64,000 nucleotides of DNA from Chlorokybus atmophyticus (Eukaryota > Plantae > Mesostigma and Chlorokybus algae), in contig RHPI01002112.1 of NCBI GenBank assembly GCA_009103225.1, forward strand, positions 76,283 to 140,282, given 5' to 3'. Shown piece by piece: positions 43,282 through 63,825 of this stretch. Below the pieces are notes generated by a model, which was given only the letters and a program-made list of their open reading frames with translations, was not told the DNA's origin and ran no database searches. The translations under genes were made by a program, and so were the position numbers. Within the stretch, counting starts at the first letter, position 1. Every line of letters starts with the position of its first letter.

Positions 43282-43811
43282 TGTAATGGGAGCAATAATA
43301 ATACGGGTATTATTGCTACCTAAATAACACATTTTGTATGTAATAAGTATCTAAATATGCTTATTTATACCTCTTTTCTACGGTTCCTCGCTTATTGAAG
43401 GCTATGATGCTTTATCATAGCTTAAATAAGAGTCCCAATGGGTGTAGAACCGCTTATTCAAGCCTATTTAATGTCACATTTGACAAAATGTGATCACTAT
43501 CTCGTTAAGTACCTTACGATATGTATCTTTTGTTAGGTGCCTTATCGATAGGTACCTTATCTGAGCTGTGATTGGCTCACGCTAGATTTCCTAACTACCC
43601 TATCTGTATGGTCGATGTCTAATTGTGAGTTAATTATCGAGAGGTATATAGTTAATATACTCTTAATATAAATGGTCACATTAAACTGTTGTGGGGACTT
43701 TTCAGTTCTCTGCTCAGTGGCGGCCACGCCATTAAAAGGTTTATCATAGGCGGTGTGGGTGTTGGGGTAGAGGATTGAAGGGGCATCACCGGCGACGGTG
43801 AGGCTGTTACA
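43282..43811 (+). repeat. 5' LTR, copy 1
   Basis: TGTAATGGGAGC...GCTGTTACA, homologous to the other three LTRs. Confidence 0.95.
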
Positions 43812-44358
43812 TTTGGCCTGGAGATCGGGACTTGGTTGGGACAGTTTTGGGGAGGTTCTAGGATAATCTGTTTCCAAACACTGTTAGTCTGAAACTCTCC
43901 CCCTTTGGCTTCGGCCTGGAGGTTGGGACTTGGTTGAGGACAACACAGGGTTAGGACATTCTGGTCCCATTCAGACATGTTTGATTGGTGACACTCCAGA
44001 TGCAACCTTTCCTGTTTTGAGACTGGTTTGGACTCTGTTTGGGACTTTTACAACTTGGGGTCATTTTGATCCTCTCGTTGAACCTGGTCCATTGGTGAGG
44101 TTCTCACCATTCCATTTTGCCTGTTTTGCAGACAAATGGAAGAGAACTCGGTGCCCACCTCAAAGGGGAAAGCTTGCAAAAAGAGCATTTATCCCGTGAG
44201 GAGGAGTTTCCATCCAGGGAGAATATTTCCAACCCGGATGATGCACCTAATGAGTCTCATGCTGCTAAGGATGTGGATGGCTTGGTGGAACCAGACGGAC
44301 CACCACCACCACCATCATTCATGCAGCCTGAAATCTCAATTCGCTTGACAAACAGGAG

Positions 44359-45300
44359 TTGTTGGACCATTTTCTTGGCACCTATGATGAGGAGCCTCGT
44401 GAGGCAAATGTCTCACTTGTCAACTTCCTCTTTCATGTGGCGGAAAAGATCTCAAAGCTCACCACCTTTATGGGGCGAGATTGGGAGGAATCAATGGGTG
44501 AAGGCAAACGTGTTCTGAATATGATCGAGCGCCTTCAACGCTCTGACAGTGGTCCACCTGTTCAGGCGCTTGCTCAACCTGCCGATTTTGTTCCCAACAA
44601 ACAAGCGGCAATTTTCGACTGGCTCGTGAAGCTGAGACACTATGTCAACTCCCTTCACAAGTCTAAGGAGGGGAAGTTGCGTGTAGCTGAGTTGCTGATC
44701 CCAAACGGTGCTCTGGCAGAGTGGTACCGCCGTAAGCAGAAGGATACCAACCTCGGGCGGGAAGTGAATCAGTTGTGCTCTTTCATGGAGCAGCGCTATG
44801 GTGGCGCAGATCCAGCCCAGGTTGCTCGCAACCAGTTGCACAATCTGCGTCAGCACGGGCGTCCGGTTCAACAGTATATCCAGGATTTGCAGTCGTTTGT
44901 CAGCAGAATTAATGCTGGCAAACTACCTATCAGTGATGCTGATCAGCTGGATATGTTCAGGCGGGGCCTGGACACAGATCTCGTGCAGCATGTGGCCGTC
45001 AACCCCGGAAGTTTACAAGAGTGGGCCTCGACGGATTTACCAATGCTGATGCAGATGGTTGCTGCTGTGGACAGTGTAGAGCGCTTTCACGCAAACATGC
45101 AAACCACAGCAAAAGAGGCAGCCCCGGTTTCAGCTGCAAAGCGCCCGGCCACCGACGACAAACCTTTTCTGAAAAAGGCAAAAACATCTCAGCCTGCTGG
45201 CCCCTACAACGCGGCCAAATCCACCATCACTTGCAGTTTCTGCAAGAAGACAGGTCATGGGGAGGCCAAGTGCTATGCAAAGCAGAATGCACATAAATAG
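44359..45300 (+). CDS. gag: gag, copy 1 (the true start may lie upstream)
   Basis: Capsid-like region (WLVKLRHY, A.WYRR, ARNQLHNLRQ) and zinc knuckle CSFCKKTGHGEAKC; ends in TAG. Confidence 0.88.
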   Translation: MLDHFLGTYDEEPREANVSLVNFLFHVAEKISKLTTFMGRDWEESMGEGKRVLNMIERLQRSDSGPPVQALAQPADFVPNKQAAIFDWLVKLRHYVNSLHKSKEGKLRVAELLIPNGALAEWYRRKQKDTNLGREVNQLCSFMEQRYGGADPAQVARNQLHNLRQHGRPVQQYIQDLQSFVSRINAGKLPISDADQLDMFRRGLDTDLVQHVAVNPGSLQEWASTDLPMLMQMVAAVDSVERFHANMQTTAKEAAPVSAAKRPATDDKPFLKKAKTSQPAGPYNAAKSTITCSFCKKTGHGEAKCYAKQNAHK

Positions 45301-48300
45301 GAATTGTCCGCAATTGGTAGCTTAGTCGAGCAGAACGACGTTAAAAACCCTGTACTTCTTGATAAAGTTTCCTCTCTTTGTGATGTATCAGATGTATGGA
45401 CTGATATGAGCACACCACCTGTGTTGACAATTGCAAACGGTTGTGTTTTATTCAATGTTCCATTCTCTGAATTGGTAATTGCTATTAAGCACTTACACGA
45501 GTTGCAATTACAACATGCTGTCACTGAATGCGTAGTTATCCCTCGGTATCATGGCCCGTGGTCGCGATTGCTGCAAGGGGGAGAAGTAATTATGCAACTC
45601 TTACGCAAGGATACAGGAGCTTCACCGTTGCAAGTGATCTTTATCAAGCCTGCTACCAATCACGGCACTCCGACATTAGCTACATCTGATGGTCACTCAG
45701 TGCCACTCAAGTGAAGATTTGAGAGTCAATTTATGGGCACACCATGTACAGCGTTTATTGATACTGGTGCAAACCATAACTTTGTTGAACATGACTGGGT
45801 GAAACGAAATAACATACCTTTCACACCAATCACGTCGTATGTACGTGCTGCTGGTTCCACCCTCAATGCAATTGGGGAGGTGAAGGGGCGTTTTGTTATT
45901 AGCAGCCACAAGACTCCACCAACTTTCATCGTGGTGGATATAGGCATTCCCGGGGTGGATGTTTTGGGTGAACAATGGCACACCGAAGCAGGTTTGCAAT
46001 TGGACTCTCGAGCAAATACGTGCATCCTCTGTAAGGGTAAACGTAAGGCGACGTTAATCGCACCTGTACTCGCACATGTTGCTCGCGACAATGTTCCGCT
46101 CTTTCCTGCTATGCAACTGAAACATTGCATACGCAAGCGTGAGAAAGTATATTTGATGCACTTACGACAGGTAGAGACACCTATTGAACAGGCCGTATCT
46201 GACCCTGTGGTGCAATCACTTACGGAACAATACGCAGATGTATTTCAGGATGAACTCCCAGAGTTGCCTCCTGATAAAAAACATACATCATACCATTCTG
46301 TTGGAAGAGGGGGCAAAGCCACCTTAGCGGCCTATCTATAGGGTGAGTCCCTTAGAACACGCGGAAATGGAAAAACAGCTCAAAGAGTTATTGTACAAAG
46401 ATTTATTAACAACGAGCATATCTCTTTTTGGTGCACCAATTTTGTTTGTGCCCAAAAAGAATGGCAAGCTACGCATGTGTATTGATTACCGTGCGTTAAA
46501 CAAACTAACTGTGAGAAACAGATTCCCTTTGCCTCGGATTGATGATTTGTTTGATAAGCTATCAGGTGCAACAGTGTTCATCACACTGGATTTGACCAGT
46601 GGTTATCATCAAACCAAAATCCACCCGTCGGATATACAAAAAACTGCATTCGCACCCCACTATGACACTTTGAGTATAAAGTGTTACCATTTGGGTTAAC
46701 AAATGCACCGGCTACATTTCAGACAGCAATGAACGCGGTATTTGCTGATGAATTGTACAAGTTTGTACTGGTAGATCTAGACAACATTATCGTGTTCAGC
46801 AAAACCCGGGAGGACCACCATAGGCATGTGGAATTGGTTCTAGCTAAGTTACGCGAACACAAATTCTATGCCAACCTGTCCATATGCAACTTTGCAAAGG
46901 AACTACCCTGAACTACCCTTTTTAGGGCATGTAATTGGCAAAGAAGGATTGAAACCAGATTCTCAAAAGGTGTGTGCGGTGAAGGATTGGCCACCACCCA
47001 AGGATGTACATCAGTTACGTGCTTTTTTGGGGCTAGCCAATTATTTCCGCAAGTTCATGATAGCATATTCTAGCATGGCAAATTCTTTAACATCTTTACT
47101 AAGAAAAGATGTTAAATTTGTGTGGACGGAGGCACACGAGGTTGCTTTTACTCGCATTAAAGATGCATTAACACAAGCCCCTGTGTTAGCCTTCCCCGAC
47201 CACACCAAGCCTTTTGTGGTGATCAGCGATGCTTCCACCATTGGGTGTGGGGCAGTCCTTCTACAAGATGACAGACCATGTGCATATGAAAGCAGAAAGT
47301 TCATTCCTGCTGAACGTAATTACACAACCACTGAGCAGGAATTGCTCGGGGTGGTGCACGCGCTGCGCACATGGCGTTGCTACTTGGAAGGGGTGGAGTT
47401 TTCAGTGATTACTGATCACAACCCGCTCACATTCTTTCATACGCAACAAAATCTGTCGAGGCGGCAAGCTAGATGGAATGAATTCATTTCTCGTTTCACT
47501 TTCACTTGGCAATACCGTCTGGGTCGCACCAATGTGGCGGATCCACTAAGTCGTAGCCCTGCTCTTTTGGCACTTACGCGCTCTCGAAATACGCGTAATG
47601 TACAACAGCCTGAAGATCCTTTCTTGAAAGAAGTGTCCACAGGTTATGACTCAGATGATTGGTTTAGCAGTCGAACCAACTTGCAACAGCTTATTGCTAT
47701 TGTTAGCAATCTGTGGTATAAAGGGGAGCAGTTGGCAATTCCCAACTCGGGCGACTTGCGTAAGCAATGCTTACATTCAGTGCATGACCCGCCATATGCT
47801 GGGAATTTGGAAAACAACAAAACACTTAAAGCTGCGCAACAGTTATACTGGTGGCCGTCAATGTCAGTTGGTGTGGATTAATATGTTCGCACATGTAACG
47901 TGTGTCAACGTAATAAGCCACTACGACAAAAACAAGCGGGACTGCTTGAACCATTAGTAATTCCAGAACAAAAGTGGGATATTGTCAGTATGGAATTGAT
48001 TGCTGACCTACCTGAAACGGCCAGATACACTGTTATTGTGGTTTTTGTTGTCCGTTTGTCCAAAATGGTGCATTTTGCCCCGTGTTGCTCAACTGTGAGT
48101 GCACGGGACTTGGCACATTTATTTGTGTCCACGGCCTTCGAGTTCACGGTGTACCGCATGAACTTATCATAGATCATGATCTTCAAATTGTCTGCAAGTT
48201 TTGGAGAGAAGTCTGTGAATTGTTGGGGGTAAAACAAAGCATGTCGATTGCTTTCCACCCGTAAACGGACGGACGAATTGAGCGAGCAAATTAAATACTG

Positions 48301-48933
48301 GAAGAAATGCTTCGCCACTATGTGGCTCCTAACCATGCTGTTTGGGACAGGTACTTGCCAATGGCAGAGTTCGCTGTGAACAGCGCGTGGCAGGAAAGTG
48401 TAAAGGAAACCCCATTTTTCTTGAATTATGGGATTCACCTGAACACACCAGCGTCATTGCGTGTACCTCGCAATGCCCTGACTGTACCAGCGGCAAAGGA
48501 ATTTGCCACTGATATGCAAAAAACTTTGGCTCGAGCTAAGCTATGTCTGTCAGAAGCACAGGACAGGCAAAAAGCTTATGCTGATACACATCGAAGAATG
48601 GCCACTTTCGATGTCGGCAATAAAGTTTTGCTTACCGCAAAGAACATAACCATTAAAGGTACGGATGCCCGCAAGTTGCTGCCCCGATGGTTAGGTCCTT
48701 TCTCTATCACTGATGGAATTGGTACGCACGCTTATCGACTGCAATTGCCCCCAAGTGTGCGTATACACAACGTATTCCATGTGAACTTGTTGAAACCTTA
48801 CTGCTCAGACGGTAGAACACAGCCTCCACCACCGCTAGTTGAAGTGGACAGCGAGTTCAAATACGAGGTGGAAGCTATATTGAACCATAAGCTAAATAGT
48901 CGAGGACGCGCAACTCGCTATCTGATGAAATGA
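45301..48933 (+). pseudogene. pol: pol, copy 1: MTase-like segment, PR, RT, RH, IN, chromodomain; several stops and frameshifts
   Basis: Motifs [48 protein letters not shown] are spread over broken ORFs. Confidence 0.92.
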
Positions 48934-49181
48934 AAAGGGTATGGCCCAGAACATAACAGTTGGGAGCTTGACAGGCATCTTACGCACTGCCGCGAGTTGC
49001 TTCGAGCTTATTGGGATTCACGTCCTGTCCCATAAACTGTGGGCTTGGTTTTATGACAGACTGGCAGTGCAGTTTCATTACCACCCTGTCATTTCCTGCT
49101 ATCTTACTGGTTACAATTACTCGAACCAAGCCTGATCAACTTGAGTTCAACGAGGACGTTGAAAACCTAAGTGGGGGGGAA

Positions 49182-49699
49182 TGTAACGGGAGCAATAATA
49201 ATAGGGGTATTATTGCTACCTGAATAACACATTTTGTATGAATAAGTACCTAAATATGCTTATTTATACCTNAAATATGCTTTTTATACCTCTTTTTTAC
49301 GGTTCCTCGCTTATCAAAGGCTATGATGCTTTATTATAGCTTAAATCTCAATGGGTGTAGAACCGCTTATTCAAGCCTATTTAGTGTCACATTGGATAAA
49401 ATGTGATCACTATCTCGTTGGGTACCTTATGATAGGTACCTTATCTGAGCTGTGATTGGCTCACGCTAGATTTCCTAACTACCCTATCTGTAGGGTCGAT
49501 GTCTAGTTGTGAGTTAATTATCGAGAGGTATATAGTTGATATACTCTTGATATAAAAGCTCACATCAAACTGATGTGGGGACTTTTCAGTTCTTTGCTCA
49601 GTGGCGGCCACGCCGTTCGTCGAAAGGCTTGTCATAGGCGGTGTGGGTGTTGGGGTCGAGGATTGAAGGGGCATTACCGGCGACGGTGGTGCTGTTACA
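49182..49699 (+). repeat. 3' LTR, copy 1
   Basis: Follows the PPT; TGTAACGGGAGC...GCTGTTACA. Confidence 0.95.
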
Positions 49700-50115
49700 G
49701 CCAGAGCGTCGTGACCGAAGAAGGCTATTATGGTATTAGGTCATCGTAATCAATCAAAATCGAGATCCAAGAAAACGCGGTTATATAAAAGTACTTTGCC
49801 CCGTGAACCTAGCGGCCGCTGCTTTCGTTACGCGACGCTTACCAGATCATCGTGATTAAAGAAGGCTATCATGGTATAGTCGCCGTAGTCAAGGGACAAA
49901 AAGTGATTGTCAAGTGCTTGCCCCCCTCAAGCGCGTCAGAGCATCGTGACCGTGGATGTTGATGATATGGGTATATTGATGGTTGTATGTTTCATGCTTG
50001 TAGCTTGTCAATTGATTGTGTGGTTTCTTTAAGTGCAAGGAAAGTCATGATGGATGGTATATTTTATATATGTTATTGAATAGAACCATACACGTATTTG
50101 GGATACGTTGTGACA

Positions 50116-50156
<41 letters not shown>

Positions 50157-50246
50157 NCTTTAAGTGCAAGGAAAGTCATGATGGATGGTATATTTTATAT
50201 ATGTTATTGAATAGAACCATACACGTATTTGGGATACGTTGTGACA

Positions 50247-50291
<45 letters not shown>

Positions 50292-51119: not shown

Positions 51120-51211
51120 CACTTGGTTGGAGCAGCACTCAGAGACGGTCTCCGTGTGAGGAGAGCTACTCCTCACACGGAGACCGTCTCTGAGTGCTGC
51201 TCCACCAAGTG
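51120..51211. repeat. Perfect inverted repeat, 35-bp arms (51129-51163 / 51169-51203), 5-nt loop, 8-bp extension past one bulge
   Basis: GGAGCAGCACTCAGAGACGGTCTCCGTGTGAGGAG-agcta-CTCCTCACACGGAGACCGTCTCTGAGTGCTGCTCC. Confidence 0.97.
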
Positions 51212-51900: not shown

Positions 51901-54900
51901 ATGGAGAGTACCGTATACGTACCTCCAAACGCAAGCGTCTCTAGAGACGGTGTGCCATGTGTGGCCGAGACGCTCAGCGTCTCCATCGGTCGGTCAGTGT
52001 ATGGGACGTCACGTTGTTACGGTAACAAGTTTCTAACCTAACCATATTTTATCAATTGTACGTTACTGATATCGAGCTCCTCTTGACGCTGTGATATCAA
52101 CAATTCTGCCCTGTGGCGTTGCTGGCGGCGGGGGAGGAGGAGAAAGCAGCGGCGGCGGCGGTGCCGTCCGTGGTGATAGTGTACCCATTAGTGGGTAGTG
52201 GGTAGAGGGTTAGAGGGTTAGGGTGTAAATAAAGCGGCGGCACTGGTTAGTTTAATGTGTTTTATCCCTTGTATTTTTGCTGTTCACCAGATCGTTGATT
52301 GATATGATGCTTGTCTGTGCGTACGTGTGCGTTGGTCTCAAGTGCGTGTGTCCATTTTATAGTGCATGACTATGTCTTTGATGATACTCACACACACACA
52401 CACATACCCACACACACACACACGCACACGCACGCGCACGCGCACGCACACGCACACGCACACACACACGCACACACAAGTCAAGCACTATGTGTGTGGA
52501 TGGGTGGGTGCGTGTGTGGCATGTGACTCTGCACTAGCATCAATAGTTTTGCGTTGTGTGCATGTTTGTGTCACTTATGTGTGCGTTTAGCATAGGCGTA
52601 TGACTGTTAGCAACAGCAACTGCGTTGTGCGCTTGTGTGCTTGTTAACGATAAAACTGTTCAAAAATGCGTGCATATGTCTCGTTTGGTCAGCGGCCGCT
52701 CAGAGCCTACAGCATGCCCTGATGGCCAACTTGTGCTTTACATATGTCAGGGTGGCGCAGCGGCGGAGTCAGCAGAGAGGAGCTTTATCAGCCAGCATGC
52801 AAGTTGGGTGCTTGCTGCTACAAGCCAACTATTGTGGCAACAATTGTTTGCATGTGTTGCGGTGTCAAATTCAGTCCTTGAAGTCCTTAATGCTGTGGTG
52901 TAGGTCATGCAAGGCGTATCGAAGGTTGACTAGTGGGCTCCAACATCTGCGCGCACAGGCTTCAAACAGGTCAGCAAATGGTTGTGTGCATGTGTGTGGC
53001 TTGCGCGCCTGGTGTGGCATGTGCGTATGCGTGTGCCTGCGATTGCGCAGCTGTTCAGCATAGGCGTGTGAAATGTCTGCAACAGCAGCAACTGCGTCTC
53101 CGCTGTATGTGTGTAGAGCAACTACTGCGCATGCATTGTGTTGAGTGTGTAGTTGTATGTATTTGCACTTGTTGCACTGATTGCTAACTATTGCAATGCA
53201 TCAAATGCAAGATCATGGCCTGGCGCATGGCTTTGCGTCATGTGAGAATCTTAAGCAGCTTGCAAGGGCTGAAAGTGTCAAAGGCTTTTCGGGACAGCAT
53301 TGGGTTCGCGGCGGCTGCAAAGTTGTTGAACAAAGGGCATCACGATGGAGAGATTCCAAGTTTCTCTCCATCGCGCATTCTGCCTGCTTTCACCTCAGCA
53401 ACTGCGCAAGCGCTATCGACACAAGTGACCAAGCAATCTGCATTCAATGCATCTTCTGTGTTTTGGCCTTTGGCGGCATTGGCAGCCATGGCTAGCGGCA
53501 TACAAGTAAGCGTCCATGGCAAGCCTTTCCTTGTGCTATAATGTCTTGTACTGCAGGACAAATTTTGGAGCCATTTTTGCAGGTCAACATGAGCAGCGAG
53601 CAAGAAGATGAAGAAGCAGAGGAGCGCGGAATGCTTCCATCCCCCGGTTCTGCACCGCGCGTGCCAACAGTGACGAACATATTAAACTGAAAACAACATG
53701 AACGCCCGGCCAATACTTGTTTGAAATATGAGCAAGGGCTGGGATTGTATGAGGTATAGACTTGTAATGCTATGCAACAGCAAGTGCTAATGGTTATGGA
53801 TCTTATTGTCTTACAAATAGAACAATTGTAGGAGTGGTGCACTCGCCATCAATGTCCATTCGCATTGAAGCAAGCACTGTGGAACGCTTCATGGCTGAGC
53901 ATCACGAGTGGGCATAAAACAAGTTGGAGAACCACATGAATAGTATGCAGGACGCCATTAAAGACCAGGCAATGCGAGACGGCAATGGCACTATACCGAT
54001 CAACTTGGGCAGCATCCCCATCATCCAATGAATCCTGCGAACCGCACGGCAAAGTATATCAAAGACTGCCAAACTATAAGTGTCATTTTCATTGCACCAA
54101 TTCTGATGCTTGTCTTGAACACACCAATATGACCTGCATATACCAAAAGGGAGTCTAAGGATCGGTTAGCTGGGACGGCTGCAGAAAGTTACACATTTGC
54201 TCAGTATCAGAGTATGATTGAGTATTGGCTTCACAAATGTGCAAACACTACCAACATTGTGAAGCAAGCCGTTCCATTATAGCTCGGTAATTGTTATTCA
54301 CTCTGCAATGTTGCGGTGTTGCAAACTTGTAGACATTGTATAGCAAGAGGAGTGTCACCGTCAACATTAGCGGCTGCTTCGTGCGTGAGTTGGTTGGATC
54401 TGGCAATGCGTCATACTTGTCTATTGCGCTGTGATGCTGTGAAGGCAGCAGAAGAATGCAACCTGTAAGCAAGTATGATGTGGGGACTGGGTGCTTGGGA
54501 CCTGATCAAGGCGTAATACTCTGCTTCGCATTGCGAATGGCAAGATAAATAAGGTGTGCATCTGCATTTTGTGCAAGCTTTGGCCAATCATGTACAACTT
54601 GTTACAACCATCCTACTATGTTGGTGCAGAATGGCAACGTATATACAATACTTTGGAGGGTTGCGACATTGGAATCTCATGTGCGACATGCACGATGCGC
54701 TGGCATTCACATTCTTCCACAAGTACCACATCGCGCAACGCCCATTCCCTTCTTTTGAATCGCGACAATCTGGGTAGGGCATGCGCATAGCACCGTGCTT
54801 GCATACAATGCTTAATTGATGATGTATCCCGGTATGGTGAGCCATTGTTTCCTGGTGAGAGGACTGCAAAGGCTATCAGTTGCAAACAGCAATACTTGAA

Positions 54901-56483
54901 CTCCTGCGAAGCATTCAAAAAATGTGGCATCATTACCGGCCGCGCCAAAGTACATGCCCCGCGCAAAGAAGCAAGTCAGCGAGCCACGAATGCCGGGTGA
55001 GTTTACACTATGTTGTGCCATTGTCTTAATGAGCACAACTTAGCATTAAGTTGTTAGGGCAAGTGAGGAGGGCATAAAGCAAAATAGCGGTGGAACAACG
55101 AGCACAAATCCTATGTGACACAGCTCCATGTGGGTACTTGTGCTGTACTAGCAGGTTATGGGCATCAATTTCACGAGCATAAGCATGTGCTGGCCCGGTC
55201 ACGGTTTCCCTACCCGCCAACATCCGTGAGAGCATCTTCCCGCAGCTGGAGGAGCATCTTGCCTCTGTCATACAGGTACCTTATGTTGGATTCTTTTGCA
55301 CATTTGTTACTCAGTCGGAGAGGTGTTTGCTTCGCAACATGTAGCCAAGTGTTGCACTGTATTGATGTTGGCACACGCTTTACACATGCATTTTTGCAGC
55401 ATTGCTTCGATGGTCCCGACGAGGTGCGAGACTATACTGCATACAAGCATCTTCTCATGTTGGACTATCTGCAAGATGTCATCGGAAGGTAAGCAAGTGT
55501 ATATCTTTATCAACAAGTGCAGTCCGTGAGTCTTGTGTATTGCTTATCAGGATGTCGCCATCATATGCAACGAAGTTGTTCAACTGCGCGGCGGTACCAC
55601 ATACGGCTGCACAGATGTATCAGTTTGTGACCACGATCTGTTTAACACGCCACAGTTCTACGCGTGGGCCAACATTGTTGTCGCCGCTTACGATCAATCC
55701 ATGCAAGAAGCAAATCCGCAATGTGAAGATTTGTCGGATTGGGTATGTATGACACACAAGCTGCTGCTTGGTTGACGTGATGTTGTACAATGCATGTCTG
55801 TCCCCTTAATGATGCTTGAGGTCTATGTTGTGGTCGCGCAGCTAGCGCACATCATGCGCGGCAACTACGCATTGTTGACTGTGATATAGACCGCATTGTG
55901 GACGTCGCTTGCAAGCTTCTTCGTGTCATTACAGCTATCGACACTGGCTTTGCTGCGACACATGCAGAAGTGAAGGTTGTGGCTGACTTGGTGCGAGAGC
56001 TAGATGCCGGTATGGGGGTGTCTTTGCCTGCAGATGTGGCATCAATAACTGCTCGTGAAGAGGCACCGTCCGCATCATCACCACCACGCAAACGCGCACG
56101 TGCCAATGATCCCAGTCGTGCTGCTGATCCATTATCGGCGGCAGGCAATAATGTCACTCGGCACTCAGCACATTCTGTCGCCGCTACCTTTGTACCTACC
56201 AAGTATAAAATGGTTGACGTACCAACCATGGTGGTGTGGCAAGAATACACAACGGGCATAGGTGGGCCGACAAGCCGCGACTTGGATGACAAGTTCAAGT
56301 GCACTTGGCGTTGTAACAATGAGCGCTTGCGCAAGCAATACGGCAAGCGCTCAATGTACTGTATAAAGCTATCCAGGAGTTGGCGGCATTGCGGAACATT
56401 AGCGAAGACATGGCAGCACAACAATTGGATCAGCAGAGGCAAGAGCAGCAAAAGCCAACCGCAAATGGCAGAGGCACCAGACC

Positions 56484-57018
56484 TGTAACGGGAGCAATAA
56501 TAATAGGGGTATTATTGCTACCCGAATAACACTTTAAATACATTTTGTATGAATAAGTATTTAAATATGCTTATTTATACTTCTTTTCTACGGTTCCTCG
56601 CTTATTAAAGGCTATGATGCTTTATCATAGCTTAAATAAGTCCCAATGGGTGTAGAACCGCTTATTCAAGCCTATTTAGTGTCACATTTGATATAATGTG
56701 ATCACTATCTCGTTAGGTACCTTACGATAGGTATCTTTGGATAGGTACCTTATCGATAGGTACCTTATCTGAGCTGTGATTGGCTCACGCTAGATTTCCT
56801 AACTACCCTATCTGTAGGGTCGATGTCTAGTTGTGAGTTAATTATCGAGAGTTATATAGTTGATATACTCTTGATATAAAAGGTCACATCAATCTGATGT
56901 GGGGACTTGGAGTTCTCTGCTCAGTGGCGGCCACGCCGTTGAAAGGCTTGTCATAGGCGGTGTGGGTGTTGGGGTAGAGGATTGAAGGGGCATCACCGGC
57001 GACGGTGGTGCTGTTACA
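56484..57018 (+). repeat. 5' LTR, copy 2
   Basis: TGTAACGGGAGC...GCTGTTACA followed by the PBS. Confidence 0.96.
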
Positions 57019-57295
57019 TTGGTATCCAAGAGCTGGGGGGTGACGTGGGTACTTATAGGGGGCGGCGACCTGCTTTCGGCCAATCAGAAGGCGTCGTCGG
57101 CGGCCTCCTATTCGTCCACGCAGCCCAAGCTTCAAGTTCGCTTCCCTGCGCTACCTCCACGTTGAAGCCACCTATTAAAGAGGCGGCCTCTCCACGTGTG
57201 AGGTACCATCACATGTCGGTGACTTGCCTGCTTGCCTGCTTGTCAGCTGCTTGCCAGGTGCTTGCCAGGTGCACGTGTGTACTTTCATGCACATC

Positions 57296-57550
57296 ACACA
57301 GTGGTTTGCCAGTGCACTATCATTACTTGCAGTGATTGCCTGTCATTGCATGCGGTGATTGCGGCTTGCTAGTGTGCCATCACTGTTTGTCACACTTAGT
57401 GCACTATCATTGCTTGCAGTGATTGCCTGTCATTGCATGCGGTGATTGCTTGTCATTGTGCTTGCCAGTGCATGTCACAGTTAGTCACCGTACGGCTTGC
57501 CTGTTGCATGCCTGTGGCTTGCCTGTTGCATGCCTGTGACGTACCTGTGA
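57296..57550 (+). repeat. Tandem repeats in the gypsy 5' leader
   Basis: Two copies of AGTGCACTATCATT.CTTGCAGTGATTGCCTGTCATTGCATGCGGTGATTGC and two of GCTTGCCTGTTGCATGCCTGTG. Confidence 0.85.
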
Positions 57551-58037
57551 CCTGCCAGCGGCTTTGCCGGGTCGTTTGACCCGGGTCCGTAAGTTCCAAA
57601 CCAAACTGTTCCCAAACCCTCCCCCTCTGGCTTCGGCCTGGAGATCGGGACTTGGTTAGGACAGTTGTGGGGAGGTTCTAGGACAATCTGTTCCCAAACC
57701 CTGTTAGCCTGAAACCCTCCCTCTCTGGCTTCGGCCTGTAGATTGGGACTTGGTGGAGGACAACACAGGGTTAGGACATTTTGGTCCCACTCAGACTTGT
57801 TCTGTTTGGTGACACTCCAGATCCAACCTTGCCTATTTTGGGACTGGTTTGGACTCTGTTTGGGACTTTTACAACTTGGGGTCATTTTGATCCTCTCGTT
57901 GAACCTGGTCCATTGGTGAGGTTCTCACCACCCCATTCTGCCTGTTTTGCAGGCAAATGGAAGAAAACTCGGTGCCCACCTAAAAAGGGGAGAGCTCAGA
58001 AAAAGAGCAACTTTCCCGTGAGGAGGAATTTCCATCC

Positions 58038-59132
58038 ATGGAAGATATTCCGAATCCGGATGATGCACCTGATGAGTCTCAAGCTGCTAAAGCTGCGGAA
58101 GCTTCAGTGGATGATAGATCACCTTCTATATTCCCTGAGTTTTCTATTCGCATGACACAGCAGGACTTGATGGAGCATTTCCTTAGCACCTATGATCAGG
58201 ACCCTCGTGAGGCAATTGTCTCATTCGTGAACTTTCTCTTCCTATTGGCAGAAAAAGTTTCAAAGCTCACCACCTTTATGGGGCGAGATTGGGAGGGGCA
58301 GATGGGTGAAGGCAAACGTGTTCTGAATATGATCGAGCGTCTGCAGCGTGCTGACGGTGGTCCACCTGTTCAAGCACTTGCTCGTCCTGCCGAGTTTGTT
58401 CGCAACAAGCAAGCGGCCATCTTCGACTGGCTTGTGAAGTTGCGACACTATGTCAACTCCCTTCACATTTCTGAGGAGGGGAAATTGCGTGTAGTTAAGT
58501 TGCTGATCCCAAACGATGCTCTGGCAGAATGGTACCGCCGTAAGCAACGGGGTACAAACCTCGGGCGGGAAGTAAATCAGTTATGCTTTTTCATGGAGCA
58601 GCGCTATGGTGGCGCAGATCCTGCCCAGGTTGCTCGCAACCAGTTGCACAACCTGCGTTAGAATGGGCGTCCGGTTCAGCAGTATATCCAGGATTTTCAG
58701 TCGTTTGTCAGCAAGATCAATGCTGGCAAACTACCTCTCAGTGATGCTGATCAGCTGGATATGTTCAGACGTAGCTTGGACACAAATCTCGTGCAGCATG
58801 TGGCCGTCAACCCCGCGAGTTTGCAAGAGTGGGCCTCGACGGATTTACCAATGCTGATGCAGATGGTTGCTGCTGTGGACAGTATAAAACGCTCTCACGC
58901 CAACATGCAAACCACGGCAAAAGAGGCAGCCCCGGTTTCAGCTGCAAAGCGCCCGGCCACTGGCAACAAACCTTTTGTGAAAAAGGCGAAACCATCTCAC
59001 CCTGCTGGCCCCTACAATGCGGCCAAATCCATCATCACTTGCAGTTTCTGCAAGCAGACAGGTCATGGGGAGGCTACGTGCTATGCAAAACAGAATGCAC
59101 AGAAGGCCAAGCAGCAGAGAGAAAAGAAATAG
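58038..59132 (+). pseudogene. gag: gag, copy 2 (internal TAG at 58659 where copy 1 has CAG)
   Basis: Homologous to copy-1 gag; knuckle CSFCKQTGHGEATC. Confidence 0.9.
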
Positions 59133-62100
59133 GAATTGTCCGTGGTTGGTAGCATAGTCGAGCAGAACGACTTTAAAAACTCTGTACTTCTTGATAAAGT
59201 TTCCTCTCTTTGCGATGTATCAGATGTATGGACTGATATGAGCACACCACCTATGTTGGGAAATGCAAACGGTTGTGTTTTAATCAATGTTCCATTCTCT
59301 GAATTAGTAACTGCTGTTAACCACTTACACGAGTTGCAATTACAACATGCTGTCACTGCATGTGTAGTTATCCTCGATATCATGGCCCGTGGTCGCGATT
59401 GTTGAAAGGGGGAGAAGTAATCATGCAACTCTCCCGCAAAGATACAGGAGCTTCACCATTGCAAGTGATCTTTATCAAGTCTGCTACCAATCACGGCACT
59501 CCGACATTAGCTACATTTGATGGTCACTCAGTGCCACTCAAATGGAGATTTGAGAGTCAACTTATGGGTACACCATGTACAGCATTGATTGATACTGGTG
59601 CAAACCATAACTTTGTTGAACATGCTTGGGTGAAACGTAATAACATTCCTTTCACACCAGTGACGTCATATGTACGTGCTGCTGGTTCCACTCTCAATGC
59701 AATGGGAGAGGTAAAAGGGCGTTTTGTTATTAATGGCCATATAACCCGACCAGCCTTCATCGTGGTGGATATTGGTATCCCCGGGGTGGATGTTGTTTTA
59801 GGGGAACAATGGCACACTGAAGCAGGTTTACAATTAGACTCTCGAGCCAATACGTGCACCCTTCGTAAAGGGAAACGTAGGATGACTTTAACAGCATCTG
59901 TACTCGCACGTATACCACGCGATAATGTTCCGCTCCTCTCTGCTATGCAATTGAAACGTTGCATGCGTAAACGTGAGGAAGTATACTTACTGCACTTACG
60001 ACAGGTGGAAACACCTGCTGAACAGGCTATCAGTGACCCTGTGGTGCAGTCACTTACGGAACAATTCGCAGATGTATTTTAGGATGAACTCCCAGAGTTG
60101 CCTCCCGATCGAAACATACATCATACCATTCCGTTAGAGGAGGGGGCAAAGCCACCTTGGCGGCCTATATACAGGCTAAGTCCCTTAGAACACGCGGAGA
60201 TGGAAAAACAGCTCAAAGAGTTATTGGACAAAGGTTTAATAACAAAGAGCATATCTCCTTTTGGTGCACCAATTTTGTTTGTGCCCAAAAAGAATGGCAA
60301 GCTACGCATGTGTATTGATTACCGTGCGTTGAACAAGGTCACTGTGAAAAACAGATACCCTTTGCCTCGGATTGATGGTTTGTTTGATAAGCTGTCAGGT
60401 GCAACAGTGTTCAGCACGCTGGATTTGACCAGTAGTTATCATCAAATCAAAATCCACCCGTCGGATATGCAAAAAACTGCATTTCGCACCCCACTAGGAC
60501 ACTTTGAGTATAAAGTGTTACCATTTGGGTTAACAAATGCACCGGCTACATTTCAGACAGCAATGAACGCGGTATTTGCTGATGAATTGTACAAGTTTGT
60601 ACTGGTATATCTAGACGACATTATTGTGTTCAGCAAAACCCGGGAGGACCACCACAGGCATGTGGAATTGGTTCTAGCTAAGTTACGCGAACACAAATTT
60701 TATGCCAACCTGTTCAAATGCAACTTTGCAAAGGATGAACTACCCTTTTTAAGGCATGTGATTGGCAAAGAAGGATTGAAACCAGATCCTCAAAAGGTGT
60801 GTGCGGTAAAGGATTGGCCGCCACCCAAGGATGTACATCAGTTACGTGCTTTTTTGGGGCTAGCCAATTATTTCCGCAAGTTCATGATAGCATATTCTAG
60901 CATGGCAAATTCTTCAACATCTTTACTAAGAAAAGATGTTAAATTTGTGTGGACGGAGGCACACGAGGTTGCTTTTACTCGCATTAAAGATGCATTAACA
61001 CAAGCCCCTGTGTTAGCCTTCCCCGACCACACCAAGCCTTTTGTGGTGATCAGCGATGCTTCCACCATTGGGTGTGGGGCAGTCCTTCTACAAGATGACA
61101 GACCATGTGCATATGAAAGCAGAAAGTTCATTCCTGCTGAACGTAATTACACAACCACTGAGCAGGAATTGCTCGGGGTGGTGCACGCGCTGCGCACATG
61201 GCGTTGCTACTTGGAAGGGGTGGAGTTTTCAGTGATTACTGATCACAACCCGCTCACATTCTTTCATACGCAACAAAATCTGTCGAGGCGGCAAGCTAGG
61301 TGGAATGAATTCATTTCTCGTTTCACTTTCACTTGGCAATACCGTCCGGGTCGCACCAATGTGGCGGATCCACTAAGTCGCAGCCCTGCTCTTTTGGCAC
61401 TTACGCGCTCTCGAAGTACGCGTAATGTACAACAGCCTGAAGATCCTTTCTTGAAAGAAGTGTCCACAGGTTATAACTCAGATGATTGGTTTAGCAGTCA
61501 AACCAACTTGCAACAGCTTACTGCTGTTAGCAATCTGTGGTATAAAGGGGAGCAGTTGGCAATTCCCAACTCGGGCGACTTGCGTAAGCAATGCTTACAT
61601 TCAGTGCATGACCCGCCGTATGCTGGGCATTTGGGGAAACACAAAACACTCAAATCTGCGCAACAGTTATACTGGTGGCCGTCAATGTCAGCTGACGTTG
61701 ATCAATATGTTCGCACATGTGACGTGTGTCAACGTAATAAACCACTACGACAAAAACAAGCGGGATTGCTTAAACCATTGGCAATTCCAGAACAAAAGTG
61801 GGATAGTGTCAGTATGGATTTGATTACTGACCTACGTGAAACAGCAGCTAAATACACTGCTATTGTGGTTTTTGTCAATCGTTTGACTAAAATGGTGCAT
61901 TTTGCCCCGTGTTGCACAACTGTAAGTGCACGGGACTTGGCACACTTATTTGTGTCCACGGTCTTTCGCGTTCACGGTATACCGCGTGAACTTGTCACAG
62001 ATCGTGATCCTCGTTTTGTCTCCAAGTTTTGGCGAGAAGTCTGTGAATTGTTGGGGGTAAAACAAAGCATGTCGACTGCTTTCCACCCGCAAACGGACGG

Positions 62101-62869
62101 TCAAACTGAGCGAGCAAATTAAATACTGGAAGAAATGCTTCGCCACTATGTGGCTCCTAATCATGCTGATTGAGACGGGTACTTGCCAATGGCAGAGTTT
62201 GCTGTGAACAACGCGTGGCAAGAAAGTGTAAAGGAAACCCCATTTTTCTTGAATTATGGGATTCGCCCAAACACACCAGCGTCATTGCGTGTACCTCGCA
62301 TTGCCCTGACTGTGCCAGCGGCAAAGGAATTTGCCACTAATATGCAAGGAAATTTGGCTCGAGCCAAGCTGTGTCTGTCAGAAGCACAGGACAGGCAAAA
62401 AGCTTATGCTGATACACATCGAAAAATGGCCACTTTCGATGTCGGCGATAAAGTTTTGCTTAATGCAAAAAACTTAACCATCAAAGGTACGGGTGCTCGC
62501 AGGTTGCTGCCCCGATGGTTAGGTCCTTTCTCTATCACTGATAGAGTAGGTACGCACGCTTATCGACTGCAATTGCCCCCAAGTGTGCGTATACACAACG
62601 TGTTTCATGTAAACTTGTTGAAACCTTACCGCTCAGACGGTAGAACACAGCCTCCACCACCGCCAGTTGAGGTGGACAGCGACTCGGAGCTCGAATACGA
62701 GGTGGAAGCTATATTGAACCATAAGCTAAATGGTCGAGGACGCGCAACTCGCTATTTGGTGAAATGGAAAGGGTATGGCCCGGAACATAACAGTTGGGAG
62801 CCCGACAGGCATCTTGCGCACTGCCGCGAGTTGCTTCGAGCTTATTGGGATTCATGTCCTGTCCCATAA
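59133..62869 (+). pseudogene. pol: pol, copy 2: MTase-like segment, PR, RT, RH, IN, chromodomain; 1 frameshift (~59375) and 3 nonsense codons
   Basis: LIDTGANHNF, YLDDIIVFS, H...H...C..C zinc finger, SMDLITDL / TDRDPRF / GQTERAN, YEVEAILNHK...YLVKWKGY. Confidence 0.95.
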
Positions 62870-63016
62870 ACTGTGGGCTTGGTTTTATAACAGACTGGCA
62901 GTGCAGTTTCATTACCACCCTGTCATTTCCTGCTATCTCACTTGTTACAATTATCCGAAATCAAGCCTGATCAACTTGAGTTCAACGAGGACGTTGAAAA
63001 CTTAAGTGGGGGGGAA

Positions 63017-63533
63017 TGTAACGGGAGCAATAATAATAGGGGTATTATTGCTACCTGAATAACACATTTTGTATGAATAAGATTTAAATATGCTTTTTAT
63101 ACCTCTTTTTTACGGTTCCTCGCTTATCAAAGGCTATGATGCTTTATTATAGCTTAAATCTCAATGGGTGTAGAACCGCTTATTCAAGCCTATTTAGTGT
63201 CACATTTGATATAATGTGATCACTATCTCGTTAGGTACCTTACGATAGGTATCTTTGGATAGGTACCTTATCGATAGGTACCTTATCTGAGCTGTGATTG
63301 GCTCACGCTAGATTTCCTAACTACCCTATCTGTAGGGTCGATGTCTAGTTGTGAGTTAATTATCGAGAGGTATATAGTTGATATACTCTTGATATAAAAG
63401 GTCACATCAATCTGATGTGGGGACTTTCAGTTCTCTGCTCAGTGGCGGCCACGCCGTTGAAAGGCTTGTCATAGGCGGTGTGGGTGTTGGGGTAGAGGAT
63501 TGAAGGGCCATCACCGACGGTGGTGCTGTTACA
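63017..63533 (+). repeat. 3' LTR, copy 2
   Basis: Follows the PPT; ends TGTTACA and then the TSD. Confidence 0.96.
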
Positions 63534-63689
63534 AGACCATTGACTGTAGCAGAACTGACTGAAGTGTTGCGCCCCAAGAACAGGAAAGATGTTGGAGAAT
63601 AGCTTAGGTAGTCTGGTGCAATAAGTTGATCAGTTGTGCAGTCACTTATTGAAGTAGCTTGCACATGCGTATTTTTGGCTTTATTGCCA

Positions 63690-63825
63690 CACACACACAC
63701 GCGCACGCACACGCACGCACGCACGCACACACACACACGTACATGTACATGTATATTTATATGCATGTATATGTATATATATGCATATACACATATATGC
63801 GCATATACACATATAAATATATATG

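Follow-up and report, generated by a model that had tools for sequence, protein, structure and literature searches.

A probable decayed CryptonF-type DNA transposon, divided by introns and a nested Gypsy element, in a streptophyte alga

A series of short, frame-changing reading frames on the + strand of Chlorokybus atmophyticus contig RHPI01002112.1 raises the question of whether they are the exons of a single transposase gene and, if so, of what kind and in what condition. The stretch of DNA analyzed, here termed the window, is 64,000 nt in length, and the locus in question spans positions 53589-56483. Our analysis indicates that this locus is very probably a decayed copy of an intron-containing DNA transposon of the CryptonF type.

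Transposase blocks and exon-intron structure

By translation, all of the CryptonF transposase blocks were found on the + strand between 53589 and 56483 and in the correct order. An N-terminal core-binding-like region is followed by a tyrosine recombinase core and a C-terminal GCR1_C domain, and the whole is interrupted by GT-AG introns (Table 1). The codons for the R-K-HxxR-W-Y residues follow one another in that order on the one strand, each aligned by eye to the corresponding catalytic position in the published CryptonF sequences, and all five positions are exactly those given in the initial annotation of this DNA. No reverse transcriptase-like ORF was detected within 52.5-56.5 kb, no RNase H within or adjoining this interval, and no inverted repeats bracketing the Crypton gene; one copy of the Crypton was present in the 64-kb window. 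CryptonF elements are defined by this domain order together with the lack of reverse transcriptase and terminal inverted repeats (PMC3212892). Thus, the architecture of the locus corresponds to the published definition and supports the CryptonF reading.

The exons were compared by eye to the machine-read CryptonF proteins of Additional file 3 of PMC3212892. About ten colinear blocks matched the Phytophthora proteins CryF1_PI and CryF1_PS, with an identity of approximately 30% over about 330 residues (by eye). The number of colinear blocks and the identical spacing, which is maintained over introns and frameshifts, place this match beyond chance, and homology of the recombinase core to published CryptonF sequences is suggested on the basis of this by-eye comparison. 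The domain order, catalytic residues and colinear blocks shared with Phytophthora CryptonF are therefore in agreement with the architecture initially proposed, and the translations and splice-site check bore out its conserved blocks over frame-changing, GT-AG-separated exons.

By splice-phase check, at least five GT-AG introns of 46-124 nt were found to be in phase (five to seven when candidates are counted). The RPANT motif of exon 1 is identical to that of CryF1_PI, and removal of intron 1 preserves the 15-residue spacing to W-C seen in the Phytophthora CryptonF proteins. Further blocks in the N-terminal region are EWC (53832), Y-T-D-Q..HP.HP.N (~53990-54040) and KRE..DR..Y...EYW (54139-54238); stops at 53915 and 54130 are possible lesions or may be intronic. 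Splicing of the candidate intron that follows would excise a TAG at 54280 and leave 16 residues from EYWLHK to CLLR, compared to 18 in CryF1_PI. For the intron downstream of the catalytic lysine, an alternative GT donor two bases upstream of 54556 was out of phase. Splicing ahead of the W and Y exon generates N-A-G-A-S-E-E-G-I, which parallels L-A-G-A-T-E-S-Q-I of CryF1_PI, and the box II exon itself matches AK.HA.R...AG of the same protein by eye.

One junction (54773-54823) was found to be disrupted. The sole GT-AG interval at this position is 18 nt, below intron size, and the junction is probably a lesion. A 107-nt intron (54773-54879) would be in phase but was rejected, as it deletes Y-G-E-P-L-F-P-G..I-S, a block that aligns with CryptonF. 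Downstream of the tyrosine, the LQD and H.LFNT..F..W exons match LQD and H..FN[ST]..F..F of published CryptonF. Two donors lie here: a weak one at 55478, which keeps the phase, and a strong GTAAGC at 55489, which does not. Translation of 55551-55742 in frame 1 is open but has no H.LFN[ST]..F block, and this reading was set aside.

Table 1. Features of the Crypton locus, the nested retrotransposon and flanking repeats (positions in the window).
Feature	Position	Strand	Details
(C-purine)n microsatellite, possible left flank	52409-52478		70 nt; 1.1 kb upstream of ATG
Exon 1	53589-53753	+	ATG 53589; RPANT motif 53703-17; by translation
Intron 1	53754-53831	+	78 nt; GTATAG...TTGTAG; phase 0
N-terminal core-binding-like exons, putative borders	53832-54238	+	Frames 0, 2, 1; by eye vs CryF1_PI/PS
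Candidate intron	54239-54370	+	132 nt; GTGCAA...CATTAG; in phase; other acceptors present
Box I arginine exon, CLLRCD	54371-54464	+	R = cgc 54427-29; CLLR identical in CryF1_PI
Intron	54465-54510	+	46 nt; GTAAGC...ATCAAG; phase 2; junction codon CTG
Catalytic lysine exon, NGKINK	54511-54555	+	K = aag 54542-44; matches G-K-T-N of published CryptonF
Intron	54556-54629	+	74 nt; GTGCAT...GTGCAG; in phase; junction codon GTA
Exon with G-G-L-R-H...C...A-L-A...F and FPSF	54630-54772	+	Matches RH..C..ALAL..F and PDF of CryF1_PI
Disrupted junction	54773-54823	+	Frame 1 to 2; TAG 54775 and 54788
Box II exon, K-V-H-A-P-R, ending ..N-A-G	54824-54996	+	HAPR 54953-64 (H 54953, R 54962)
Intron	54997-55057	+	61 nt; GTGAGT...TGTTAG; phase 2; junction codon GGG
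Exon with W, Y, LAGY and IFPQLEE	55058-55275	+	W = tgg 55091-93; Y = tat 55112-14
Intron	55276-55399	+	124 nt; GTACCT...TTGCAG; phase 0
Two exons, putative shared junction	55400-55742 (55400-55477/88, 55551-55742)	+	Blocks LQD and H.LFNT..F..W
Last exon part 1, linker and GCR1_C (~56189-56483), putative upstream border	55820-56483	+	Pfam, phmmer, HMM
Ty3/Gypsy chromovirus	56484-63533	+	7,050 bp; within Crypton last exon
Last exon part 2	63539-63602	+	20 full codons 63540-63599; stop TAG 63600-02
(C-purine)n microsatellite, possible right flank	63688-63739		52 nt; 85 nt past stop codon

Homology searches with the C-terminal domain and the recombinase exons

The GCR1_C-like domain that had been proposed to follow the recombinase was confirmed by Pfam, phmmer and a purpose-built HMM. 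Pfam GCR1_C was matched at an E-value of 4e-4 and 21 bits (cut-off 23) over profile positions 13-53 only, a match that is partial because a frameshift splits the domain. A phmmer search of 1.84 billion proteins returned 12 matches, all of them GCR1_C proteins (best E 5e-13), with neither a close relative nor a recombinase partner. When an HMM built from 41 GCR1_C repeats was run on the six-frame translation of the whole window, the piece at 55820-56485 was detected at an E-value of 1.6e-7; the runner-up was the shifted frame at 56323-56526, which resumes at HMM positions 52-79. The core of the domain, V-W-Q-E-[YW]-T-T-G-I..G-G-P..R-D-L, is nearly identical to that of CryF1_PI. Word-index protein searches found nothing with the 222-aa last-exon piece, two matches (neither with a recombinase) with one GCR1_C repeat of the metagenomic protein P0003 and, when 13 aligned GCR1_C-repeat proteins served as the query for recombinase plus GCR1_C, 29 matches that were all repeat proteins. 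A scan of metagenome contigs with the GCR1_C exon confirmed nothing.

Homology searches with the recombinase region were run exon by exon. The initial annotation had named HMMER searches for NDC10_II and GCR1_C as a check: GCR1_C was detected as described above, so the search was not empty, whereas no single exon matched the Pfam recombinase models, Phage_integrase included, or NDC10_II. PHROGs searches of the refined exons returned no recombinase family, and PDB sequence searches with three pieces gave no relevant match. By protein-language-model search, the HxxR exon was placed near the tyrosine recombinase families DUF3504, Phage_integrase, DUF3435, Integrase_1 and MrpR_C_cat at 0.84-0.89, with an unnamed bacterial hypothetical-protein cluster at the top rank (0.91); the same search with another exon provided no lead to a recombinase family. 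An AlphaFold model of the 69-aa HxxR exon had a pLDDT of 49, too poor for fold comparison.

Lesions, the nested Gypsy insertion and alternative explanations

The Crypton copy is dead and is a pseudogene. A nonsense codon, three frameshifts and, within the last exon, 7 kb of inserted Gypsy sequence break its open reading frame. The nonsense codon, an in-frame TGA at 53688-90 of exon 1, is followed by no AG ahead of RPANT that could splice the stop away. Each of the frameshifts, at ~55086, ~55203 and ~56354, resembles the loss of one base, with stray bases AG at 55086-87, CG at 55202-03 and AT at 56354-55. At ~55086 and ~55203 the residue spacing is exactly that of CryF1_PI/PS if one base is missing, and there is no space for an intron.

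The locus had initially been taken to end at 56483. This position is instead the junction with an inserted LTR retrotransposon, and the coding sequence continues to 63602. The LTRs of the Ty3/Gypsy chromovirus (56484-57018 and 63017-63533) are 94.8% identical with TG..CA ends, a 5-bp target duplication (AGACC) is present at 56479-83 and 63534-38, and Pfam domains for protease, RVT_1, RNase H, integrase and chromodomain occur in that order. In the reconstructed empty site, from which the Gypsy and one duplication copy are removed, the frame of 56356-56483 continues unbroken: base 63539 closes the Pro codon opened at 56482-83, and the distal part of the exon finishes the GCR1_C tail (..P-L-T-V-A-E-L-T-E-V-L..). 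The last 21 Crypton codons are thereby parted from the rest by 7 kb. Two lessons for annotation follow from this locus: tracks based on ORFs overlook intron-split transposases, and the nested Gypsy conceals the end of this Crypton gene.

All three frameshifts are single-base losses and, as the window contains N gaps, could be assembly errors. The Crypton might then have been intact and potentially active until recently, with the Gypsy as its only disabling lesion, a scenario that would also accommodate the complete set of catalytic residues and the identity still retained between the Gypsy LTRs. We consider this improbable for three reasons: the exon 1 TGA, a lesion of the substitution type, is beyond rescue by splicing; the break at the 54773-54823 junction is a further defect; and the long, open frames of the neighboring Gypsy indicate that local base-calling is not generally poor.

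Still less probable is a domesticated, Crypton-derived host gene comparable to yeast Ndc10 or Gcr1. The single copy in the 64-kb window, the lack of close relatives in the phmmer search and the retention of every catalytic residue could be read in this way; yet the nonsense codon, frameshifts and Gypsy insertion, and the transposon-rich surroundings with two Gypsy copies in the window, are those of a transposon copy, and the catalytic residues kept here are typically lost once a Crypton gene is domesticated (PMC3212892). A DIRS/Ngaro-type retroelement remnant as the source of the recombinase, or chance recombinase-like blocks beside a true GCR1_C, is barely credible even though the recombinase Pfam models found no match, given the lack of reverse transcriptase and RNase H noted above, the CryptonF-specific blocks beyond the catalytic residues (RPANT...WC, and LAG[FY] and IFPQ.E after the Tyr) and the downstream GCR1_C fusion, which is a CryptonF signature (PMC3212892).

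Relation to known Cryptons and possible origin

Domain order, catalytic residues and colinear blocks of the decayed CryptonF-type copy are shared with the oomycete elements CryF1_PI and CryF1_PS (Kojima & Jurka 2011, PMC3212892), and oomycete and fungal CryptonF elements have a very similar GCR1_C core and likewise lack inverted repeats. By contrast to CryF1, the algal gene contains five or more short GT-AG introns, has about 13 fewer residues from the box I Arg to the Lys, and is represented by a dead copy. The crypton-derived yeast proteins Ndc10/Cbf2, Gcr1, Msn1 and Hot1 have GCR1_C in common with the algal copy, and Ndc10 and Gcr1 also have a recombinase-derived middle part as a common feature; the yeast genes are intact and single-copy with the catalytic residues lost, whereas the algal copy is broken with the residues kept. 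The nearest database relatives of the algal GCR1_C (best E-value as given above) are tandem repeat proteins from ENA metagenomes (P0001-P0033), which carry two to five GCR1_C domains and no recombinase, an architecture unlike that of the algal copy.

CryptonF elements were initially considered fungal and oomycete. The host range is wider than this view and includes Chlamydomonas (PMC9977147). The suggestion that such elements are little documented in green algae holds only in part, as CryptonF-1_cRei of Chlamydomonas reinhardtii is active and has been seen transposing (López-Cortegano et al. 2023, PMC9977147). This element is likened to the present copy by description, both being CryptonF elements of green-lineage algae, although the host algae differ. 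CryptonF elements are thus already known and seen jumping in Chlamydomonas, and the present copy is an ordinary addition that provides an extra data point on host range; a single dead copy says little alone. Our search of the literature found no paper naming Cryptons together with streptophyte algae.

An intact element of this type would carry a single gene for a protein of roughly 700 residues, with an N-terminal core-binding-like region, a tyrosine recombinase core (R, K, HxxR, W, Y) and, at the C-terminus, GCR1_C for DNA binding. The mechanism proposed by Goodwin et al. and the behavior of CryptonF-1_cRei suggest, by analogy, that the recombinase may join a short element-end sequence with a near-identical target, and the element would thereby integrate or excise without terminal inverted repeats. 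The Ty3/Gypsy chromovirus inserted in the last exon at a later step. The present copy is incapable of such recombination.

Regarding origin, we offer only as a doubtful proposal that the copy represents, taken jointly, a CryptonF lineage of an early-diverging streptophyte alga that is either old in the green lineage or horizontally acquired from oomycetes or fungi and that perhaps integrates into (C-purine)n. In the former case, CryptonF would predate the divergence of plants from fungi and stramenopiles. With respect to horizontal transfer, the algal GCR1_C core is strikingly close to that of Phytophthora CryF1_PI. CryptonF-class elements in Chlamydomonas target a CAYCG motif and cause rearrangements (PMC9977147); compared to this target, the strict C-purine repeat flanking the present copy cannot contain CACCG. 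With respect to microsatellite integration, the longest and second-longest (C-purine)n runs of the window flank the Crypton copy, one on each side.

Recombinase blocks and likeness to published CryptonF proteins

The Crypton locus (+ strand) was read by stop-to-stop translation of 53300-56800, by inspection of the raw sequence and by a coordinate-only script. All of the catalytic residues named in the initial annotation were found at the positions it had given. As it had also held, no single ORF covers the Crypton blocks, which are spread over all three frames. Searched singly, the exons gave no match to the Pfam models NDC10_II and Phage_integrase and, one by one, none in PHROG and PDB sequence searches. 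A protein with both recombinase and GCR1_C was returned neither by three word-index searches nor by a phmmer search (1.84 billion representatives). Because the profile and sequence searches of single exons gave no recombinase match, homology was judged by eye, by comparison of the window translation with CryF1_PI and CryF1_PS, Phytophthora proteins of the published CryptonF alignment (PMC3212892). The window blocks were found to be colinear with these proteins, at an identity estimated by eye as ~30% over ~330 residues; judged from sequence, this likeness would be beyond anything attributable to chance.

Catalytic residues, sequence blocks and introns of the Crypton locus
Feature	Position	Strand	Property	Published CryptonF
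Catalytic R (LLRCD)	54427-29	+	translation	
Catalytic K (NGKINK)	54542-44	+	translation	
H-A-P-R	54953-64	+	translation	
Catalytic W	55091-93	+	translation	
Catalytic Y	55112-14	+	translation	
R-P-A-N-T	53703-17		then W-C after 15 residues	identical motif; same spacing with 53754-53831 removed
Y-T-D-Q..H-P-H-H-P-M-N				Y-S-D-Q..H-P-H-P-R-N
K-R-E-S-K-D-R				K-R-E-Y-A-D-R
C-L-L-R				C-L-L-R
G-K-I-N				G-K-T-N
R-H..C..A-L-A..F				R-H..C..A-L-A..F
F-P-S-F				V-P-D-F
A-K-V-H-A-P-R				A-K-T-H-A-A-R
N-A-G / A-S-E-E-G-I			spans an intron	L-A-G-A-T-E-S-Q-I
R-W-N				R-W-N
Y-V-T-Q-L				Y-L-S-A-L
L-A-G-Y				L-A-G-F
A-R-S-(R)-V-S-L-P...I-F-P-Q-L-E			equal length	A-R-A-S-V-D-P-P...V-F-P-Q-V-E
L-Q-D				L-Q-D
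H-D-L-F-N-T-P-Q-F				H-P-P-F-N-S-T-G-F
GCR1_C core V-W-Q-E-Y-T-T-G-I-G-G-P..R-D-L..W-R				V-W-Q-E-W-T-T-G-I-H-G-G-P..R-D-L..W-R
GT-AG intron	53754-53831	+	78 nt, phase 0	
GT-AG intron	54465-54510	+	46 nt, phase 2	
GT-AG intron	54556-54629	+	74 nt, phase 2	
GT-AG intron	54997-55057	+	61 nt, phase 2	
GT-AG intron	55276-55399	+	124 nt, phase 0	

In a protein-language-model search, the exon carrying HxxR was matched best (0.91) to an unnamed bacterial hypothetical-protein cluster, with DUF3504, Phage_integrase, DUF3435, Integrase_1 and MrpR_C_cat among the named clusters (0.84-0.89); these matches provide an independent lead to recombinase families. Another exon gave no match in this search. The N-terminal exon 54139-54279 (..Y-T-F-A-Q-Y-Q-S-M-I-E-Y-W..) weakly matched Pfam DUF7441 (E 0.07, 13.6 bits).

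The proposal that the gene contains introns is borne out by five GT-AG intervals, which connect adjacent blocks in phase and give back the published CryptonF spacing; 54239-54370 and 55478-55550 are possible further introns.

The GCR1_C domain

Of the two profiles expected, NDC10_II was not detected exon by exon, and GCR1_C was matched at 55820-56485 below cut-off (E 4e-4, 21 bits versus 23), over profile positions 13-53 of 80 only. With the GCR1_C piece as query, phmmer against the same representatives returned 12 matches (best E 5e-13), all with two to five tandem GCR1_C domains and no other domain. An HMM built from 41 GCR1_C repeats of these proteins was scored on all stop-free six-frame pieces of the window, and 55820-56485 ranked first (E 1.6e-7, HMM 13-56), followed by 56323-56526 in another frame (HMM 52-79). 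Thus, the GCR1_C domain is complete but split by a frameshift, and its placement after the recombinase blocks is upheld by Pfam, phmmer and our HMM. Its nearest database relatives are P0001-P0033, proteins from ENA metagenome contigs with two to five tandem GCR1_C domains and without recombinase or other Pfam domain.

Gypsy insertion, gene end and lesions

Self-comparison of the window revealed that 56484-57018 recurs at 63017-63533 (94.8% identity), 43282-43813 and 49182-49699. These four repeats are LTRs that bound two copies of a single Ty3/Gypsy chromovirus, in which Pfam detected protease, RVT_1, RNase H, integrase zinc and core domains, SH3 and chromodomain. The copy at 56484-63533, located within the last Crypton exon, begins with TGTAAC, ends with GTTACA and has AGACC at either side (56479-83, 63534-38). 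When it is removed with one AGACC, the frame of 56356-56483 continues (..G-T-R-P-L-T-V-A-E-L-T-E-V-L-R-P-K-N-R-K-D-V-G-E) to a TAG stop at 63600-02, and the sequence 3' of Gypsy provides the terminal "L..L...L" part of GCR1_C, as in published CryptonF sequences. Position 56483, initially taken as the gene end, is therefore an LTR junction, and the true end lies 7.1 kb downstream.

The two Gypsy copies are ~90% identical to each other. The LTRs of 43282-49699 (target duplication GCCAG) are 83% identical versus 94.8% for 56484-63533 (target duplication AGACC), and the insertions are therefore of different ages.

An in-frame TGA (53688-90) lies between the ATG (53589) and RPANT, a motif in exon 1, and the stretch from this TGA to RPANT has no usable AG acceptor. 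Three frameshifts carry two stray bases each (AG 55086-87, CG 55202-03, AT 56354-55), the last within GCR1_C between codon 56351-53 and the codon starting at 56356. All three sites have too little space for an intron, and one missing base at each makes the residue count exact against the Phytophthora proteins. Junction 54773-54823 is likewise broken, with two stops, a frame change and an 18-nt interval as its only GT-AG. Assembly error could account for the three single-base losses, but for neither the nonsense codon nor the Gypsy insertion.

Classification, possible target and setting

A recombinase joined to GCR1_C is the architecture that characterizes CryptonF (PMC3212892), and the recombinase residues and blocks followed by GCR1_C argue for the classification originally made. 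The Crypton is real and rightly placed in CryptonF, an already known element type, and the locus is a dead, Gypsy-disrupted copy. The statement that CryptonF is found mainly in fungi and oomycetes no longer holds: among the transposons of one Chlamydomonas strain, CryptonF-1_cRei is the most active; it targets CAYCG for insertion, leaves by clean excision and gives rise to inversions and translocations (PMC9977147). A literature search found no paper tying Cryptons to Chlorokybus, Mesostigma or other streptophyte algae.

No inverted repeats were found around the Crypton gene, and self-comparison detected no second copy within the 64-kb window. Perfect (C-purine)n runs of at least 20 nt number 13 in the window (0.7% of bases). 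The two longest, 52409-78 (1.1 kb upstream of the ATG) and 63688-739 (85 nt past the stop), share orientation and flank the Crypton and Gypsy composite. The Crypton may have inserted into a (C-purine)n repeat, the flanking runs being the split target; such repeats are common in the Chlorokybus genome, and the arrangement may instead be coincidence.

The window is eukaryotic and transposon-rich, with 43-58% GC and N gaps, and many of its spurious ORFs consist of CA-type microsatellites. Interval 51128-51204, in unannotated surroundings, is a 77-bp hairpin-forming palindrome (perfect 36-nt inverted repeat, 5-nt spacer), and at 50024-50285 a 131-bp unit is tandemly duplicated (99% identical), with a long (AT)n run in each copy.
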